Virus record (IMG/VR): IMGVR_UViG_3300033183_000491
Location: 1-64,000 of that record
Strand: one strand, 5' to 3'
Length of the DNA: 64,000 nt
Below are positions 6,605 through 63,720 of this stretch, piece after piece; within the stretch, counting starts at the first letter, position 1; every line of letters starts with the position of its first letter. The position numbers and the translations under genes are program-made. The notes under the pieces were generated by a model, which worked only from the letters and a program-made list of their open reading frames with translations, ran no database searches and was not told where the DNA came from.

Positions 6605-6633
6605 ATTATAACTTTATTAATTTAAATTTACAC
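6605..6633 (-). promoter_or_regulatory. Promoter GTGTAA-N17-TATAAT
   Basis: Exact motif upstream of the MoxR gene; one of 15 copies. Confidence 0.75.
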
Positions 6634-8659: not shown

Positions 8660-8689
8660 ATTATACAATTAAAAATTTATTAATTACAC
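8660..8689 (-). promoter_or_regulatory. Promoter GTGTAA-N18-TATAAT
   Basis: Exact motif. Confidence 0.7.
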
Positions 8690-29643: not shown

Positions 29644-30109
29644 TTTCCTCTTCTATTTCAGGATCATCTTTCAACAATTCTTCAGATAAGACACCTGTAT
29701 TGTCAATAATATTAGCAGTTTGACCATTTTCCAAAATAATCTTTTTTTGGTCTTTATTTATTATAACATTATTTGACTCATTTTTACACTCAAAATTATC
29801 TTTTATTTTTTCTTTCTTTTCTTCAATAAAAAACTCTTCTTCTAAAGTCATTGCATCTTCAATCATTTTGTCAATTGATTCTTTTGCTTTCTTAAGAAGA
29901 TAATCATTTACTTCGTCTAAGTCTAGAAAAATATTTTCAAGTTTTTCAATATCCACTTTTTGACTTTTTTTATTCGGTAATAAAACTTTATAGTTTGTTA
30001 CTTCACCATTCAAATCTTTAATCACAATTTGTTCTACGACTTGAACCGGCACAACTATTTGTTTGTCTTTTATAATTGTATATAAAACTTGTCCTACATC
30101 GTATGACAT
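29624..30109 (-). CDS. Hypothetical protein
   Basis: ORF track. Confidence 0.6.
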   Translation of the reverse strand: MSYDVGQVLYTIIKDKQIVVPVQVVEQIVIKDLNGEVTNYKVLLPNKKSQKVDIEKLENIFLDLDEVNDYLLKKAKESIDKMIEDAMTLEEEFFIEEKKEKIKDNFECKNESNNVIINKDQKKIILENGQTANIIDNTGVLSEELLKDDPEIEEENESSTA

Positions 30110-46209: not shown

Positions 46210-46240
46210 TTAATCAAACTTGTTAAAATAATTAATCAAA
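46197..46240. repeat. Exact 22-bp tandem duplication CTTGTTAAAATAATTAATCAAA
   Basis: Copies at 46197-46218 and 46219-46240 span the convergent stops. Confidence 0.9.
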
Positions 46241-47308
46241 AGCATTAATCTTTTTAAGCTTAGCAAGATTTGAAGACATACCCCACCCTACATCATTCTT
46301 CACGTCAGCAAGCCAAGTACTAAACTCAATATCATCATCAAGATTACCCCATACTCTTAACCAACCACTACGATTATCTGAATCGACACATTTCCAACGC
46401 ATAAATGCTTTACCATTTTTTGTTGTTTTTCTAATAACTTCAGTCACGGTAAACCATCCGATTCCACGATCACCTGGATTAATATCAAAAACACTACTAA
46501 TTTGCTTCTGTTTTAACTTTTTAAGAAGACTAGGTGGAAACAATAAGTCATCATTTGCGTCGTTACTGAGTTCAAAATAATTTTTAATTTTTTCTGATCT
46601 TTTCCAGTCAGACACAATTTTATATTTTGATAATAAATCTTCGACGATAGGTGTTAATTCCTCACCTTTTTTAAGGGCGCGTTTAATAGCTGTCTTAGTC
46701 ATTCCAAATCTTCCCTTTTTAAGTAATACATAGTTATCGAGAATTAAATCATGGAGTTGCTTATGATTATCAAGTTTATCGTCTTTAAATTCACTGAGAG
46801 ATTTAAATGCTTCCATCTTTGTTAGGGATGAAAAAGCTGTTTTATTCATCTTTGAATGCTTCCATTCTCCTTCTTCATTATAAAATAGATCTTCTAAATT
46901 ATTGTATGGTCTATTTGCAAATATTTCTTCAACAGCTTTATCACCTACTCCTTTAAGAGACGTTAAAGGTGGAACAAAAGCTTTCAAATCTTCAGAATAT
47001 TCCCATTCTGAACCAGAGTGATTTACATCAATTGCTGAAATGTCATATCCTAATGCTTTTATTTCAGCAATAACTTTTGACATACCTTTAGGGCTGCCAT
47101 TTTCAGATTGTAAAACTGTTGCTAACCATTCTGTTTCGTAGTGTGTGTGTAACCATGCAGCGTAATAAGAATCAATTGCATATGAAACAGCGTGAGAGTT
47201 AGATTGCAAAATACCATTACTTAAGTAATATTGATGATCATGATGTGAAACTTCTAGATCATACGTTTGTTGCTTACCAGTAAATTCAATTGATAAAATA
47301 CGAGGCAT
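46232..47308 (-). CDS. dnaE: DNA polymerase III alpha, C-terminal half (IntC + extein)
   Basis: The 37-aa IntC is followed by SHAVSY, IDVNHS, LTSLKGVG.KAVEEI (HhH), and the OB fold KTTKNGKAFM. Confidence 0.93.
   Translation of the reverse strand: MPRILSIEFTGKQQTYDLEVSHHDHQYYLSNGILQSNSHAVSYAIDSYYAAWLHTHYETEWLATVLQSENGSPKGMSKVIAEIKALGYDISAIDVNHSGSEWEYSEDLKAFVPPLTSLKGVGDKAVEEIFANRPYNNLEDLFYNEEGEWKHSKMNKTAFSSLTKMEAFKSLSEFKDDKLDNHKQLHDLILDNYVLLKKGRFGMTKTAIKRALKKGEELTPIVEDLLSKYKIVSDWKRSEKIKNYFELSNDANDDLLFPPSLLKKLKQKQISSVFDINPGDRGIGWFTVTEVIRKTTKNGKAFMRWKCVDSDNRSGWLRVWGNLDDDIEFSTWLADVKNDVGWGMSSNLAKLKKINAFD
47198..47308 (-). mobile_element. Split intein C-fragment (37 aa)
   Basis: MPRILSIEFTGKQQTYDLEVSHHDHQYYLSNGILQSN|S: block F YDLEV, terminal Asn, +1 Ser. 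Confidence 0.92.
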
Positions 47309-47330
47309 TATAAACCTTTCTTTTTAATTT

Positions 47331-47359
47331 ATTGTACATAATTAATTTTTTGTTTACAC
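47331..47359 (-). promoter_or_regulatory. Promoter GTGTAA-N17-TACAAT for dnaE-C
   Basis: The -35 box coincides with the endonuclease's last codon and stop (GTG TAA). Confidence 0.65.
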
Positions 47360-48340
47360 ATAAGACTTTCCAAATAACCATAATCCTCTTGTTTTATTAA
47401 GAATAATACTTTCTATTTTGTCTAATGTTTCTTTATTAAACGTACCATTTTCTTTATATTCATATTCATCATGAGAAATCCTAATTACAGTCCAACCTTC
47501 TTCTATTAAGACTTCATTTAATTCTTTGTCTTTTTTTGTAACTTCACTAAGATTTCCTTTTTTCTTAAACACGTCTTTAAAATGATGTATACCGTCAAAT
47601 TCAATAACTATTTTATTTTCTAATGACATAATATCAATCTGTCTAGTGTTTGTCTTAGTTGATAAAAACTTTCCTGTTCTTTTAAGTGTTTGATTTCTTT
47701 TAAAAGTATTAGGAAAGTTTTTATCAACAATGTTAAATAAATCACCTTCAGGTTTAGACTGCCAAGATTTATGCATAACTGAGGTGCATTTTTTATAAAA
47801 TTCTCCCGGGTTATTCTTTCGCCATTCTGCAAGTCTATTTGATCTTTCTTTTTGGATATCTTTCCTACTTGAAGTTTTTTTAGCAGTCCTCGAAGATCTT
47901 TCTCTAAATTCTTGCGTTTTGTTTAAATTAGAAAGATTTTTTCTTCTTGATTCTCTAGCAAACTCTGAATTCATAATTCCTTTAGAAATAGATTTTCCTA
48001 ATTTTTCAATGTATTCTGAAAGATCCTCGCCTTTTTCTTTTTTTCTAGATATCCATGCTCCGTTTTTCTTTCCTGACATTGAATATTTATTTTTAGATTT
48101 TTCACACATCGCTAAGCCATATTTTAATTCATATTCTTCTTTACTTAAATTATGATTTTTAATATGTAATTTTATATTTTTTCTTACAAATCCACAAATT
48201 TGACATTTTACATAATCAATATTTTCTTTGTAATTTTCTAATATAAATTTACATTTTTCTTGATGGCTTTTTAATGTCGATTCTTTTATATAAGATTTTC
48301 CACACACACAATCGAAAGATCTTCTTGAATTATCAACCAT
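47354..48340 (-). mobile_element. Free-standing homing endonuclease (Zn fingers + Vsr/EDxHD-like nuclease) between the dnaE halves
   Basis: CVCGK...HQEKC, CQICG...H; SKPE, QIDI, IEFDGIHH, KDKELN and GWTVIRI. Confidence 0.88.
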
Positions 48341-51258
48341 AATGGAAGCATCCTTCCATCTTCAACTCTAAACTTGTGATGCATTGTACATTCAACACTT
48401 TTATCATTTTCCAGCGTAATCTTGAATGTTGGAACTTCTCCATGATCATGGTTTGCCAAAACCTGTGTAAATATATCTTCCTTTTTTTCTTCATCTCTTG
48501 ACTTAACGTAAACTCCAGGGACAACATCTTTAATCTCTTTCGTAGATAAATAATTTCCTTCGTGATCATAAGTATCTATTAAAGTATTAAATAGTAAACT
48601 TTTATTGAAGCCGTAAACAGCGAAACCTTCTATCTCTTCCCAAAGTTTTCTTGATATGTGTTCAGGAACATCATTAATTTCTTTTGCGCCTTTAATAAAC
48701 TTTTCTCTTGCAATTGTTTTTTCATCTTTTTTATTTCCCATAGTTGCAAGATTGTTTTTAACAAGTGTTTTTCTTAACTTGTCAGCTTCACCAGGGTCAA
48801 AACCAGATAGTTTTTGTGCAAGAAGCATAAATTGCTCTTGAAAAACAACATAAGAGAAAGTTGGTCCTAAAACTTCTTCAATAATTGGATGGTCATATTT
48901 AATCTGGTCAGCATTTTGTTTAGATTTAACATATTTCTTGTGAACGTTAGCTTTAAGAGGTCCTGGTCGATAAATTGCTGTAAGTGCAGCTAGTTCTTCA
49001 ATATTCTCTGGTTTTGCTTCTAGAGAGAAGTTTCTTGCGCCAGAATTTGTAAATTGAAATATTCCTACAAATCTTCCATCGTGATATACATGTTTCCAAA
49101 CCTCTTGATCATTTTGGTCGTGAAATCTACAGTTAAGATGTTTGTCAAAAAATTCTTTTGCATCTGAAAAAGTTGGGTTTTTATTGCCTTGTTTTTTCAA
49201 GATTTTATAGATACAATTTTCAATGTCTTTTAGTAATGATAACCCCAAGAAATCAAACTTAATAAATCCATTATCTTCTAGATTTCTAAAGTTTAATCCT
49301 TCTGACCAAGGAGTTTGTAATTCGCCACGAACACCGACAATAGGCATTGTTGTTTCTAAATGTTCTGGATCAGCTACAAGAACTCCTCCTGCGTGACGTC
49401 CAATTGCTCTATTTTGCATAAACAAAGAAGCAATATGCGTTTCTACTTCAGGATACCTTTCCATAAAGTCTTTATATTCAGACGAATATTTTTTACAATC
49501 TTCATGTTTAAGAACAAACACAGATTTTTCTTGATCATCACCTTTAGCCATTTTCATGACTTGTTCTTGAAGAGGTCCAGTAACTTTATTAACTTCATCA
49601 AAAGGAATATCGTAAAATTTTGAAATATCTTTAACTAGAGATTTAAGTTTAAGAGTATTAAAATTTGAAACAGGAATAACAGCATCATTACCATATAATT
49701 CTTTTGCTGCGTTAATTAATTCATCACGATCACCTGCATCCGTATCAATGTCAGGCCAACTAACTCTATGTCGCCCTAAAAATCTAGCCCAAAGAAGATC
49801 GTATGGCAAAGGATCAACTTGCGTAATACCTAACAAATAATTAACTAAAGATCCCGCACCTGAGCCTCTTCCTGGACCAAGTAATGTTTTCTTTTCAGCA
49901 CGTTTAAATATTTCATACATCGTAATAAAATAAGCTTCATGTCCAAGATATTTTATATCTGAAAGTTCTTCTTTAGCTCTTTCAACATATTCTTTATTCG
50001 TATGAAGATTATGTTCGATAAGAGATTCTTTAACTAAAGAAGACAAATGCTGAAATGGTGTTTTGTTTGGTACGTTAATTGTTGGAAGTTTAACTCCTGT
50101 ATCAATCCATGTATCTTCAAACTCATTCCAAACAATATCGTGAGTTCTATTAATAGCATCACTAACAAGTTGCTCATTACCTTTATAAAAATCATATAAT
50201 GGATATGAATCTAAAAATTCATCCCACATTTGTGATGCATTCTTTGGATATAATTCGCATTTAAGGTCTTCAAACTCAGGTAAAGTAAGATTGTCTCTTT
50301 TACCTAACCATCCAAGTTTTTTATATAGTTCTCTTGCTTGCCATTTTTCATTTGAAGGATAATGCGAATCTGCTGTACAGATAAGTGGAATACCTGTTAA
50401 CTTGTGATGTTCAATAAGATAGTCATTAACAGTATGCTGTTTTTCTAATTTATTAAATTGAAGTTCTAATTTAAAATTATTTTCGCCAACGCAAGAAACA
50501 AATCTATCTGTTAGGTTTAATAATTCTTTTTGAATTTGCTCGCGAGATTGATTATGTACTTCACCTCTTAGAATACGATTACTAAAAAGTCCGCCAAGAC
50601 ATGCGGTTGATATATGTAATCCTTCACCATGTTCTTGAAGCATTTGAAAATCAATACGAGGATATCTATAAAACCCGTATTTATAAGATTTTTTAACTAA
50701 AGTAAATAAATTGTGAAGACCTTTTTGGTTTCTTGCAGTTACGACAAGATGATAGCGTCGTTTCCATTCGTCTTTAAGAATATCTACGTTTTTTGTTTCG
50801 TCTTCGTCCTCGACAACTAAACCACCACTTTCATCATCTGCATCAATGTCAATTTTCTCTTTAGACTTCTTTTCAGCTGCAGCAGCTGTCTTAGCATCTT
50901 GAATAGCTTGTTTATGTGCGGCATAATCTTCTTTCCATTGCTGAAGAGATGGAACAAAATAAAATTCAACACCATAAATTTGTCTAAATTTTCTTCCAGA
51001 CTTTTGCATTCTAACTGCATGAGATCGTGCATGCGCAAGTCCATTACCATTACCATGATCAGTTAATGCCCATGCATCCATACCTTGAGATTCTGATATT
51101 ACAAAATCAATGTGGTCTGAAGGATATCCTAATCCATCAAATGTAGATACCTAGGAGAAGGTTGAATGGGCATGCAAACCAACGAATCTGTCGGGTCTAA
51201 GCATATCAAGTTCAACCTTCTCTAGGTACCTCCTTTCTGTTTTAAATGTATTATTCAT
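48286..51258 (-). CDS. dnaE: DNA polymerase III alpha, N-terminal half (PHP + polymerase + IntN), with in-frame TAG at 51151-51153
   Basis: An ATG at 51258 (or 51204) is in frame with the 931-aa ORF; FVGLHAHSTFS-TAG-VS-TFDG, LTDHG, GVE, TADSHY, GRGSGAGSL, WPDIDTD, FDFLGL and YGFNK. Confidence 0.9.
48289..48600 (-). mobile_element. Split intein N-fragment (104 aa)
   Basis: Begins after YGFNK with Ser1 (SLLFNT); block B CTMHHKF; ends at a TAA. Confidence 0.9.
51145..51231 (-). other. 21-bp hairpin in dnaE mRNA enclosing the premature UAG
   Basis: Arms at 51211-51231 and 51145-51166: 12 bp, a bulged C, then 9 bp with one G-U pair; 44-nt loop. Confidence 0.9.
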
Positions 51259-51292: not shown

Positions 51293-51322
51293 ATTATATC
51301 AATGTAATGTTTATATTTACAC
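51293..51322 (-). promoter_or_regulatory. Promoter GTGTAA-N18-TATAAT for dnaE-N
   Basis: Exact motif 35 nt upstream of the ATG at 51258. Confidence 0.75.
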
Positions 51323-52573: not shown

Positions 52574-52603
52574 ATTATATTGAATTAATATTTATATTTA
52601 CAC
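52574..52603 (-). promoter_or_regulatory. Promoter GTGTAA-N18-TATAAT
   Basis: Upstream of the photolyase-like gene. Confidence 0.75.
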
Positions 52604-52621: not shown

Positions 52622-54991
52622 ATGAATACAAAAAATTTATTAAGAGAATGGAAGACTTTTCTTCTCAATGAACATAAAGTTTTTTCTTTACAAGAAATTA
52701 TTCAAACATTAATACAATCTCAAAGAAGTGAAAAAGAAGTTGCTTATCTTAAAGATTTTTGGATTAATAATAGATTTATTACAAAATATACACAAGTCAT
52801 TCGAGACGAAATTAAATATACTCATGAACCGATTGAAGAAATATTAGATGTTTGCGAGTTACATTACGAAAAAATATATCAATCTGCAGGCCCAGATATT
52901 AAAGATCAAATAGGCAGCGGAAATATTACTATAGACGATCTTAGAAAGCAAATAGATTTTAATTTTAATTTTAATAAAAATGAAATTAGACAACAATGTG
53001 ACTACCAGAATAATAGACCTGTGGTTGGAAATTATCAAGATTTTGATATAGTATATAGTGAATCAGATTTTATAGTGATAGAGCCTAAAACAACAAAAGG
53101 TTCAATAGCTTGGGCTCATGGTAAACCTGACGGTTCAGAAGAAACTGATCAAGATAGAAGAGTAGGTTGGTGCACAGGAGTCTCTTCAGTCAACAATATG
53201 TTTCAAAACTATGCAGGTGATTTACACATGTTTTATGTTATTAATACAGATTATGATAATGATAATTCTAAGAATAGAAGAATATGTTTGTCATTCGTCG
53301 TTATAAATGGTGAGCCTTCCCTTAAAGAAGAATCTTTTTCAACTGTTAATGCTTTAAATAAATCGATAGACAAAGAAGACATAGAAAATATTAAAAATCA
53401 AAAATTCTATCAGAACATCTTAGAAAGACTTCAAGGTAGAAAAGAAACCTCATATCAAAATATTTATAGTAAAGCTTCTATAGGACAAATTATAAGAATT
53501 ATAAAACAGATGAAAAGAAACAATCTTAGTGATAATTTATTAGACGAAGAAATAAAAAATTATATAAGATATACTGAATTTGACGATGTGCTATTACATT
53601 TTTTTCAAGATAAAAAATACGAAGAAATAATTACACGTAAAGTTTCTAAAGATAATGTAAGATTTGATAATACATTTAAAAAAGTATTAGAAATAGACGA
53701 ACTTTTACCGATAGTTGCAAAATATACTCAAGATCAAGATATAATTAAATTTTTAATTTCAAAAAAAATGTTTAATATAAATTGGGAACTTTTCCATAAT
53801 GAAAATGTTGACGAATCAATAAAAAAAGAATTATCTGACTATATTGTTCCTCCTTATGAGACTTTTAATAAAGAAACTCCCATACAAGATTTAATTCATT
53901 TTATAGGACTTTTTCTCAAAAGCCAAAGCACAAAATCTACTATTTTAGAAAATATCTTTAAAAATGTTTCATATGATAATTTAAAAAATATATTTTATTT
54001 ATTATTTATAGAAAAAGACGCAGATGAAATTATTGGTAAATCATTCATTGGAAATGACCATAGTCTTAAAAGCAAAAAAAATCTTTATTGTCAAATCATT
54101 TTATATATTAAAAAAATCAATCCAGAAAAATTTTCTCAAAATTTTGATTTTTGGCTTGACTTATTAATAAATAACTTCTTCACAGATAAAATTCTGGAAA
54201 ACTTTGAAATAAGTTATTTATTATCCGATGTAAATCTAAACGATAGACAAGTAAACAAACTCATCAGACTTTCTATGAGTTTAACAGCAATACCAAATAA
54301 TCGATCAAATGTTAAGTTAATAACATGCTTATATAGTCTCGATCTTAGTGACACTCAAAATAAAAAAATTAACAGCATAATAGAATTTGAAAATGAATAT
54401 TTTTCTAGCAAAATATTCAATAATATTTATTATAACTTAGATAAGTTAAATAACTTTGATATATATGATTTTTCTTTAGAGTTGTTTAATAGTTCAAACG
54501 AATCTCAAAAAAGTTATCTATCACTTGCTGTTCAAAAAGCTCTTGGTGAGTTTTGTCCAGAACTAATTAGTAATTATACAAATAATAGTATTCCTAACTA
54601 TTTAAAACTTTTGTCTGAAGAATGTCTAGATTTACCTTATGAAGAATATAGCAAACTATTTCATCAAGCTAATTTTGATGATTTTGTAAAAGAATTCAAT
54701 AGCGAAAGTTATGAATTTTATGACAAATACATTGAATTCATAGAATATTTTCGTGAATGTAATATAGTTCAAGAAAACCCTGAAGGTGTGTATAATCTTT
54801 TTAAATCAATAGGAATAGATCTTTCTAGTGAAAGATCACTTGAATATTTCTTTTATGGTTTTGAATTTGATGATGTGGAGGAATGTAAAGAGATGTTTGA
54901 GAATGAGCCTTACTTAAAACCAATTTTTGGTCGAAACATAGACTTAAATGAATCTTTATTGAAAAAATATATTAGCTTACTAATTTTTTAA
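52622..54991 (+). CDS. Large hypothetical protein with LLREWKTFLLNE leader and a leader-like C-terminus
   Basis: IVIEP....SIAW....GWCT core; ends LNESLLKKYISLLIF. Confidence 0.7.
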   Translation: MNTKNLLREWKTFLLNEHKVFSLQEIIQTLIQSQRSEKEVAYLKDFWINNRFITKYTQVIRDEIKYTHEPIEEILDVCELHYEKIYQSAGPDIKDQIGSGNITIDDLRKQIDFNFNFNKNEIRQQCDYQNNRPVVGNYQDFDIVYSESDFIVIEPKTTKGSIAWAHGKPDGSEETDQDRRVGWCTGVSSVNNMFQNYAGDLHMFYVINTDYDNDNSKNRRICLSFVVINGEPSLKEESFSTVNALNKSIDKEDIENIKNQKFYQNILERLQGRKETSYQNIYSKASIGQIIRIIKQMKRNNLSDNLLDEEIKNYIRYTEFDDVLLHFFQDKKYEEIITRKVSKDNVRFDNTFKKVLEIDELLPIVAKYTQDQDIIKFLISKKMFNINWELFHNENVDESIKKELSDYIVPPYETFNKETPIQDLIHFIGLFLKSQSTKSTILENIFKNVSYDNLKNIFYLLFIEKDADEIIGKSFIGNDHSLKSKKNLYCQIILYIKKINPEKFSQNFDFWLDLLINNFFTDKILENFEISYLLSDVNLNDRQVNKLIRLSMSLTAIPNNRSNVKLITCLYSLDLSDTQNKKINSIIEFENEYFSSKIFNNIYYNLDKLNNFDIYDFSLELFNSSNESQKSYLSLAVQKALGEFCPELISNYTNNSIPNYLKLLSEECLDLPYEEYSKLFHQANFDDFVKEFNSESYEFYDKYIEFIEYFRECNIVQENPEGVYNLFKSIGIDLSSERSLEYFFYGFEFDDVEECKEMFENEPYLKPIFGRNIDLNESLLKKYISLLIF

Positions 54992-60399: not shown

Positions 60400-60428
60400 A
60401 TTATAATTTTTTTTTGTATTATTTACAC
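60400..60428 (-). promoter_or_regulatory. Promoter GTGTAA-N17-TATAAT
   Basis: Upstream of the ThyX-like/NDT operon. Confidence 0.75.
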
Positions 60429-62847: not shown

Positions 62848-62877
62848 ATTATAAATTTATAATTAAACCAATTACAC
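62848..62877 (-). promoter_or_regulatory. Promoter GTGTAA-N18-TATAAT
   Basis: Upstream of thyX. Confidence 0.75.
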
Positions 62878-63691: not shown

Positions 63692-63720
63692 ATTTTAATA
63701 ATTAATGTTTAAATTTACAC
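63692..63720 (-). promoter_or_regulatory. Promoter GTGTAA-N17-TAAAAT
   Basis: The -35 box is the GTG TAA end of the upstream gene. Confidence 0.55.

Follow-up and report, generated by a model that had tools for sequence, protein, structure and literature searches.

The window analyzed here, the first 64 kb (64,000 nucleotides, nt) of the IMG/VR virus record IMGVR_UViG_3300033183_000491, carries a dnaE gene split between separate open reading frames (ORFs) by an intein, an ORF for a free-standing endonuclease lying between the intein halves at one locus and on one strand, and the locus is thus a 'fractured gene' of the type described by Dassa et al. 2009 (PMC2677866). In the reading that we hold with considerable confidence, the two DnaE halves are rejoined by protein trans-splicing and the nuclease homes into intein-less alleles. 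The original prediction for this DNA, made from its letters alone, had described the fractured gene and missed a second interruption of dnaE, an in-frame TAG near the 5′ end, which we lean towards reading as a site of programmed ribosomal bypassing. If that reading is right, the TAG matters more than the intein.

All features of the locus are on the minus strand, at the coordinates originally predicted. The upstream ORF (48286..51081) joins the N-terminal part of DnaE to the N-terminal intein half (IntN) and has Pfam PHP, DNA_pol3_alpha, and DNA_pol3_finger domains, all three of which are found in its N-extein, a stretch of 850 codons (48601..51150) from directly after the in-frame TAG to ...YGFNK; the frame of N-extein and IntN together is open for 954 codons. 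IntN, which follows directly after ...AVYGFNK, is 104 amino acids (aa) long (48600..48289, TAA stop at 48288..48286), starts with Ser1, and contains the block B residues T72xxH75. The nuclease ORF (47354..48340, 328 aa) has its ATG start inside IntN, shares exactly 55 nt with the IntN ORF while being read in another frame, and ends in GTG TAA at 47359..47354. The downstream ORF (46232..47308) joins the C-terminal intein half (IntC) to the rest of DnaE. By its translation, IntC has 37 aa (47308..47198, ATG at 47308), ends in ...NGILQSN, and is followed by Ser at position +1, where a C-extein of 321 codons begins with SHAVSYA... (46232..47197, TAA stop at 46232-46234; Pfam HHH_6). The break point in dnaE is YGFNK|SH. 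The nuclease and IntC ORFs share one frame, yet three TAA codons stand between them, and the nuclease is therefore not a domain nested in frame. IntN and IntC are adjacent, about 1 kb apart, and each is fused on its own ORF to one part of DnaE, as in a naturally split intein. The claimed break point, lengths, terminal residues, separate genes, and 55-nt overlap all agree with the ORFs and their translations.

Related phages supply the uninterrupted form of the gene. Among 18 loci recovered by a C-extein scan of viral contigs, 13 related contigs, including the closest relative (L006), are uninterrupted and read ...(V/Q)YGFN(K/L)SHA(V/I)(A/S)YA..., which is the junction predicted from splicing and equals the joined exteins of the window. 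The C-extein is 73-86% identical to the 3′ part of the relatives' uninterrupted dnaE. Five other viral contigs (L002, L003, L004, L005/L016, and L017) carry the cassette of IntN, nuclease, and IntC in the same order and strand, a nuclease homologue 76% identical to that of the window (P0002) occurs in the order dnaE-N, nuclease, dnaE-C on further ENA, JGI, and Tara contigs, and the cassette is found in one piece, at ~97-98% identity, in Logan contigs of independent runs (seawater and marine). Over N-extein residues 184-850, amino acid identity is 95% to L006 and only ~79-81% to the cassette-bearing relatives; the special closeness of L006 on the N-terminal side ends at the junction. This patchy presence and absence fits the pattern that a mobile element produces. 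IntC is 86-95% conserved in four cassette-bearing relatives, and comparison with four relatives gave ratios of nonsynonymous to synonymous substitution (dN/dS) of 0.09-0.14 for IntN, 0.13-0.19 for the nuclease, 0.02-0.11 for IntC, and 0.05-0.14 for the exteins. Since the values of the three cassette parts are like those of the exteins, all three are maintained as working proteins under purifying selection.

Both intein halves are homologous to those of the cyanobacterial DnaE inteins; the original prediction had noted a closeness to Npu DnaE in size and IntC pattern. By phmmer, IntN matched the solved Npu and Ssp DnaE IntN chains with E-values from 5.9e-9 to 1e-3, IntC matched Npu DnaE IntC chains with an E-value of 1.8e-3, and a search of 1.84 billion representative proteins returned 219 relatives of IntN at E<1e-3. 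Given these E-values and the number of relatives, the match lies far from chance. In the phmmer alignment, T72-M-H-H75 of IntN falls on the T..H of Npu DnaE, and the terminal Ser-Asn of IntC also corresponds; the residue before the final Asn is Ser in place of His, a trait shared with Npu DnaE. The hallmarks of a class 1 intein are all present (Ser1, block B TxxH, C-terminal Asn, and Ser at +1).

A complex of IntN with five extein residues and IntC with five extein residues was modelled, and reached an ipSAE of 0.90 compared to 0.00 for the best of three controls, a score that 51 of 78 solved complexes and 2 of 108 mismatched pairs attained. The model runs agreed in at least 95% of contacts, with partner pLDDT (predicted local distance difference test) values of at least 83. 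IntN and IntC are thus predicted to dock, and because complexes of Npu DnaE have already been solved, the model indicates likeness to them rather than binding. In the proposed mechanism, IntN and IntC would bring the two DnaE polypeptides together for class 1 trans-splicing, in which Ser1 would make the N-O acyl shift, Ser+1 would carry out the transesterification, and Asn37 would cyclise, with assistance from T72 and H75 of block B. The product would be an intact DnaE reading ...YGFNKSHAVSYA...

The nuclease between the halves has, from its N- to its C-terminus, zinc fingers of the C2HC and Ros/MucR types, a helical central region, and a Vsr-like domain at about residues 193-327. Pfam matches were found to ROS_MUCR (PF05443) at residues 42-77 (E 1.7e-4) and, above the cut-off of that family, to DUF559 at residues 235-301 (E 4.8e-5); several sources label its 44 homologues as very-short-patch-repair endonucleases. 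An AlphaFold (AF2) model with a pLDDT of 82 was compared to known structures with VIA-align (residues 177/193-327), giving Z-scores of 12.2 (1CW0) and 11.7 (1VSR) for Vsr, 10.9 for the catalytic domain of I-Bth0305I (3R3P; 97 of 98 residues aligned, root-mean-square deviation 2.7), and 10.1 for a DUF559 protein, with the next unrelated folds at 9.4 and 9.1 and all others at 7.5 or below. A profile of the nuclease family searched against PDB sequences matched in the zinc-finger part only (Ros zinc finger 2JSP, E 4e-4) and did not reach 3R3P, and the relationship to Vsr therefore rests on the fold comparison. Eleven positions (Q234, D236, E247, F248, D249, G250, H253, F254, D271, I286, and R287) are invariant in 27 aligned homologues down to 35% identity; the candidate catalytic residues among them, E247, D249, H253, and D271 together with D236, come from this alignment rather than from mapping onto the Vsr and I-Bth0305I active sites. 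The Vsr/EDxHD-like nuclease originally proposed thus held for the fold and not for the type of DNA-binding region, since the N-terminus has zinc fingers in place of NUMOD or helix-turn-helix (HTH) modules. As judged from the models, the enzyme would be an EDxHD-family nuclease core (PMC3239194) behind a zinc-finger DNA-binding region. Its start is likely the ATG at 48340 and not the GTG chosen by some gene callers, because the first zinc finger requires Cys11; a Shine-Dalgarno-like GGAAGGA lies inside IntN, 10 nt upstream of this ATG. By the proposed route, the nuclease, with its zinc fingers for DNA binding and its Vsr-like domain for catalysis, would cut the intein-less dnaE of co-infecting relatives, and repair of the cut allele would copy in the whole cassette.

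The last codon and stop of the nuclease, GTG TAA, had been proposed to form the -35 box of a promoter for the downstream dnaE half. The element here consists of GTGTAA (47359-47354), a 17-nt spacer, and TACAAT (47336-47331), and ends 22 nt upstream of the IntC ATG, which is itself preceded at a distance of 6 nt by the Shine-Dalgarno sequence AAGAAAGG (47322-47315). A scan with the sigma-70 consensus did not list the proposed IntC promoter and found promoter-like sites at chance level, which first counted against the proposal, a view that was reversed by analysis of a motif specific to the phage. In this genome, as in all relatives, dnaE itself is preceded by the string that lies upstream of IntC; the window copy is GTGTAA-N18-TATAAT at 51293..51322 on the minus strand, and both dnaE allele classes of the relatives, described below, have the motif at this place. 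The window holds 10 copies of GTGTAA(A/T)-N15-19-TAnAAT, all on the minus, coding strand (6605-6633, 8660-8689, 26746-26774, 29760-29789, 47331-47359, 51293-51322, 52574-52603, 60400-60428, 62848-62877, and 63692-63720), compared to 0.76 ± 0.89 in shuffled sequences. The genome as a whole has 28 copies, and the 90 permutations of the hexamer give a median of 3 and at most 17. All 28 copies run in the direction of their local gene block, and 19 are followed within 150 nt by an ORF of at least 80 codons, in 17 cases at 18-60 nt. GTGTAA-N15-19-TAnAAT is therefore likely to be a promoter type of this uncultured phage group, and the GTG TAA proposal stands with the change that the element is phage-specific and not TTGACA. 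The copy at IntC is kept in cassette-bearing relatives. As had been claimed, the invader would be tied into expression of the host gene, the motif copy starting with the nuclease's last codon and stop, and the sequence supports the view that the invader supplies the predicted expression signals of the downstream dnaE half.

Several observations weigh against trans-splicing combined with homing. The score of the modelled complex may owe something to Npu DnaE structures that the model had learned. A comparison of identities in sliding windows around the site gave no clear co-conversion tract, and only the presence/absence pattern points to recent homing into this genome. A hairpin with an 8-bp stem that would sequester the ribosome-binding site (RBS) at the nuclease start was rejected as a conserved regulator, with a z of -0.97 and synonymous changes destroying the stem in four of four relatives. 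There are also no RNA runs listed for the phage.

The rival explanations divide over the nuclease, the intein, and the gene as a whole. An unlikely one, though the strongest of them, is that the middle ORF is a domesticated or inactive homing remnant that is kept as a source of the promoter for the downstream dnaE half, as the membership of the nuclease stop codon in the promoter-like motif and the lack of a visible co-conversion tract would allow. Purifying selection extends over the whole 328-aa protein, however, with a dN/dS of 0.13-0.19, the candidate catalytic residues are invariant in the 27 homologues down to 35% identity, and the patchy presence and absence among close relatives fits ongoing mobility. 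Improbable, in turn, is the proposal that the intein halves are no more than a non-covalent zipper, on which the DnaE pieces assemble without formation of a peptide bond. The halves of phage Aeh1 NrdA, split by mobE, assemble without an intein; the predicted tight complex of IntN and IntC would equally support mere association, and the penultimate residue of IntC is Ser rather than the usual His. Against this, splicing is very fast in Npu DnaE, whose intein has the same Ser-Asn end. The residues Ser1, T72xxH75, C-terminal Asn, and Ser at +1 are all retained, the halves are under strong purifying selection (dN/dS 0.02-0.14), and the break lies inside a conserved catalytic polymerase motif, where 141 extra residues would probably be harmful. 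That the locus is a decaying dnaE pseudogene, broken by a selfish insertion and a stop codon, is suggested by its three ORF pieces and the in-frame TAG near the 5′ end and is highly improbable, given that dnaE is the sole C-family polymerase of a genome with no PolB and only a 361-aa PolA-like ORF, that every piece is under purifying selection, and that the layout is common to many diverged and abundant marine phages. Trans-splicing of the DnaE halves together with nuclease homing thus remains the reading that we prefer.

The second interruption lies at 51145..51156 on the minus strand, where the sequence TCC TAG GTA TCT places an in-frame stop (TAG at 51153..51151) between two serine codons in PHP motif I, making it a candidate stop-hop with TCC as take-off and TCT as landing codon. 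The dnaE frame runs upstream past the annotated ATG at 51081 as far as this TAG, and beyond it lie 35 further codons (51154..51258, minus strand; MNNTFKTERRY...LHAHSTFS) that contain the first PHP motif, reach to the take-off serine codon, and start with an ATG at 51258, which follows the promoter-like motif and has AAAAGG in front of it at a distance of 6 nt. Across the stop, the frame reads ...FVGLHAHSTFS-TAG-VSTFDG.... Relatives fall into two allele classes, one with the uninterrupted ...HSTFSTFDG... and one with exactly 9 extra nt, TCT being preceded by either TCC TAG GTA or TCG TAG ATA, and with an N-terminal leader of its own that is specific to the class. The codons on either side of the TAG vary mostly synonymously, indicating that both sides are translated. 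Thirteen viral and 27 metagenome contigs carry the insert, and none has a sense codon in place of the stop, the codon there being TAG in 13 of 13 dnaE matches where any codon was allowed and a stop in 27 of 27 where TGG was also allowed.

At this same spot of dnaE, related phages have about 15 insert variants of 6-68 nt (in L005, L007, L008, L013, L015, L018, L022, L053, L055, L056, L084, L091, L092, L097, and L112-L144), compared to 54 uninterrupted relatives, and each variant yields the motif of the uninterrupted alleles, HSxFS(T/V)(F/Y)DG, once the gap is skipped. Some variants stay in frame, namely a 6-nt insert (TCG TAG TCG) and, apart from the two double-stop inserts given next, five further inserts of 9 nt. 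Others have double stops, as in the 9-nt inserts TCC TAA TAA TCT (five contigs, L084 and four metagenome contigs) and TCC TAG TGA TCC, or change the frame, as do the 10-nt inserts TCT TGAAAAA TCT, TCC TGAATGG TCT, and TCG TAAAGTT ACG; the 11-nt insert TCG TAATAATA TCA does both. Two longer inserts follow the first serine of the motif and also change the frame, one of 38 nt with TCG TAG, a 10-bp GC hairpin, and TCG, and one of 68 nt with a perfect 18-bp hairpin between TCT and TCA. In nearly all variants, the 5′ edge is a UCN serine codon followed immediately by a stop and the 3′ edge is again UCN; the exceptions are L056, which lands on ACG rather than UCN, and L055, the 68-nt variant, which has no stop directly after the take-off codon.

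Take-off and landing codons that can be read by one tRNA, with a gap that opens with a stop codon, are what ribosomal bypassing would use. Simple readthrough is ruled out for the double-stop and frame-change variants by the double stops and the frame changes themselves. For the in-frame variant of the window, readthrough giving an insertion of three residues is the main alternative. Frameshifting by +1 or -1 could rescue some of the insert variants, but would leave the matched flanking serine codons unexplained. Genome-wide reassignment of TAG was considered and rejected, as there is no suppressor tRNA among the seven tRNAs and no gain of long ORFs on readthrough, and dnaE has the sole convincing in-frame TAG. 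A search of the 44-54 kb region for an intron or known RNA element gave no Rfam match at E≤0.1. Taken as a family, the inserts of 6-68 nt look as if they are explained well only by bypassing, and for the in-frame variant in the window programmed bypassing is, on balance, the best reading. Peptidyl-tRNA-Ser would leave TCC at the stop and re-pair with TCT 9 nt downstream, giving HSTFSTFDG.

Of 16 interrupted loci, 9 have, directly upstream of dnaE, a gene for an endonuclease-I-like protein (~300 aa, with a zinc finger, PF05367 at E 2e-6, ending in ...WEGK); none of the 54 uninterrupted loci has it (Fisher p = 1.8e-7, uncorrected for shared ancestry). The gene was located upstream of dnaE in L007 (1366-2271), L013 (134-1039), L015, L018, L008, L056 (1504-2397), L084 (1494-2420), and L091 (975-1892), is present as a remnant in L097, and is absent from the window. 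On a cautious estimate that comes down slightly in its favor, the whole picture would be that DnaE needs two repairs, trans-splicing at FNK|SH and a stop-hop, which are scars of different nuclease cassettes; that the stop-hop site is one of a family of bypass inserts (6, 9, 10, 11, 38, and 68 nt) not described before, linked to the endonuclease-I-like gene and analogous to mobA/gene 60; and that the in-frame variants are the first natural 'stop-hop'. Synthetic stop-hops are known, and short natural hops have been predicted from synthetic constructs since 1987, with no natural occurrences known as of a 2016 review (PMC5009743); our literature search found no paper linking dnaE with bypassing in this sense.

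The closest parallel is T4 mobA/gene 60 (bioRxiv 10.1101/2022.08.31.505936; PMC5009743), where, as at the dnaE TAG, a stop comes directly after the take-off codon and one tRNA can read both the take-off and the landing codon, and where the insert likewise lies within a strongly conserved motif of a gene for replication and is accompanied by a free-standing nuclease gene and a replaced adjoining coding stretch. The T4 gap is 50 nt, compared to 6 nt here and 6-65 nt in the relatives, and the T4 case involves a topoisomerase gene with matched glycine codons, whereas here the gene is dnaE, the codons are for serine, and the nuclease is of another family (endonuclease I-like). If bypassing is confirmed, natural gaps graded from 6 to 68 nt at one site would make an unusually good system for working out the rules of take-off and landing.

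The arrangement of the intein and nuclease was recognized in the original prediction as one known from metagenomic phages, and 26 fractured loci, including three dnaE with Vsr-like nucleases at non-cyanobacterial sites, were in fact published in 2009 (PMC2677866). A fractured dnaE with a Vsr-like nuclease has thus already been described and the novelty is modest, lower than the prediction implied. The published loci DnaE-1, -2, and -3, from Global Ocean Sampling (GOS) data, share with the window phage-like marine DNA, a non-cyanobacterial integration point, and control elements that travel with the nuclease (PMC2677866); the sites were compared by published description, not by sequence. The Vsr-like domain of the DnaE-2 nuclease was modelled at residues 196-315, compared to 193-327 here, and Dassa et al. 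stress overlaps at the 3′ end of the nuclease, whereas IntN overlaps the 5′ end here (PMC2677866). Unlike those loci, the window has no conserved RBS hairpin and no TATAAATA late-promoter element. What the window adds is a complete fractured replication gene with its full genome, empty-site relatives, and the cassette's own promoter-like motif, and with donor and recipient alleles both defined, the model of homing and gene breaking put forward by Dassa et al. becomes directly testable.

Compared to the Npu and Ssp DnaE inteins, the window intein has the same host protein, homologous halves, the same canonical split point, and the Ser-Asn end, and its halves of 104 and 37 aa are close in size to the 102 and 36 aa of those inteins. 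In cyanobacteria, the DnaE intein sits at the junction ...Y|CFNKSH with Cys1 and Cys+1, and its halves are at distant loci. The insertion here (YGFNK|SH) is four residues downstream of that site and uses Ser1 and Ser+1 in place of Cys1 and Cys+1, and the halves are adjacent, separated by the nuclease gene. The naturally split gp41-1, NrdJ-1, and IMPDH-1 inteins also come from fractured-gene cassettes of metagenomic phages and have Ser at +1, but they use Cys1, lie in other host genes, and have no significant similarity to IntN (gp41-1, E 0.32). For the nuclease, I-Bth0305I (3R3P; PMC3239194) has the same C-terminal Vsr-like fold and a DNA-binding region N-terminal to the nuclease, and the invariant Glu, Asp, His, and Asp of the window enzyme may correspond to its catalytic motif; I-Bth0305I is intron-encoded with NUMOD/HTH modules, whereas the window enzyme has zinc fingers (one C2HC and one Ros/MucR) and is free-standing between intein halves.

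The intein had been put forward as a cysteine-independent tool, and this holds for its catalytic positions and not for the whole protein, since IntN keeps two non-catalytic cysteines, C71 and C99. Judged from its residues, the idea is reasonable and the intein may be regarded as a candidate. Cysteine-less split inteins (the Aes123 PolB1-derived CL/CLm, LCGC14 PolB2, and PolB16 OarG; PMC13014065, PMC12707363) resemble it in Ser1/Ser+1, phage or metagenome origin, and canonical split. Those characterized come from PolB genes and none is of the DnaE lineage, whereas the window intein belongs to the lineage that includes the ultrafast Npu. It points to a pool of naturally split Ser1/Ser+1 inteins in the Npu DnaE lineage that is large and unexploited.

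The occurrence of the allele was examined in the best 150 of the 219 IntN relatives. At least 123 of these are at the same dnaE site, after (Y/F)xFN(K/R/A/L). The split form, in which the protein ends right after IntN, accounts for 78, of which 43 have Ser, 28 have Cys, and 7 have Thr at residue 1. Contiguous inteins account for another 31 (16 mini-inteins of ~130-170 aa and 15 large ones of ~240-430 aa), all 31 of which have ...N|SH at the C-terminal junction. Ser1/Ser+1 is therefore the commonest state of a widespread allele and not a peculiarity of this phage, and the intein nucleophile has switched repeatedly across the allele, as position 1 is Ser, Cys, or Thr. The Ser1 codon is AGT in most cassette copies (48598-48600 in the window) and TCC in L017 (L017:3609), where residue 2 is Cys. 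At this one dnaE site, all stages of gene breaking occur side by side (an empty site, a mini-intein, a large intein, and a split intein), which fits the model of a mini-intein invaded by a nuclease gene (PMC2677866).

The full record is 239,550 bp long with direct terminal repeats, has a GC content of 29% and seven tRNA genes, and is represented by near-identical sequence in Logan contigs from seawater, marine, and estuary metagenomes of several studies. A megablast search of 50,697 phage records gave no match to a close cultured relative, and the best DnaE protein identity in the phage collection was ~31%, to Bacillus phages. The source is therefore an uncultured marine jumbo phage. Genes for a dCMP deaminase and a thymidine kinase are among the neighbors in the window.

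In this phage clade, dnaE is a hotspot of insertion, with at least five sites carrying such elements (examples are L005:3300-4560, L004, L006:1548-3000, L008, L009, and L022). L005 has a second split intein with an endonuclease-I-like nuclease at FLGRHR|C...HN|TSWPDIDTD, and L006 has a split intein with a Vsr-like nuclease at HISTA|C...HN|CLGG; neither of these sites is interrupted in the window. In runs X1, X2, and X4, near-identical strains carry different sequence from 50581 to 50596, amounting to 509 nt in X2. Beside dnaE, the window also encodes, at 52622-54991 on the plus strand, a member of a family of large proteins of unknown function with the N-terminal signature ...(L/F)(L/I)xEWKxF(L/I)N..., for which Pfam gave no significant match. 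Members of this family also occur upstream of dnaE in L002, L005, L010, L011, L012, L014, and L017, and in most relatives they lie beside dnaE on the opposite strand, sometimes as two tandem copies.

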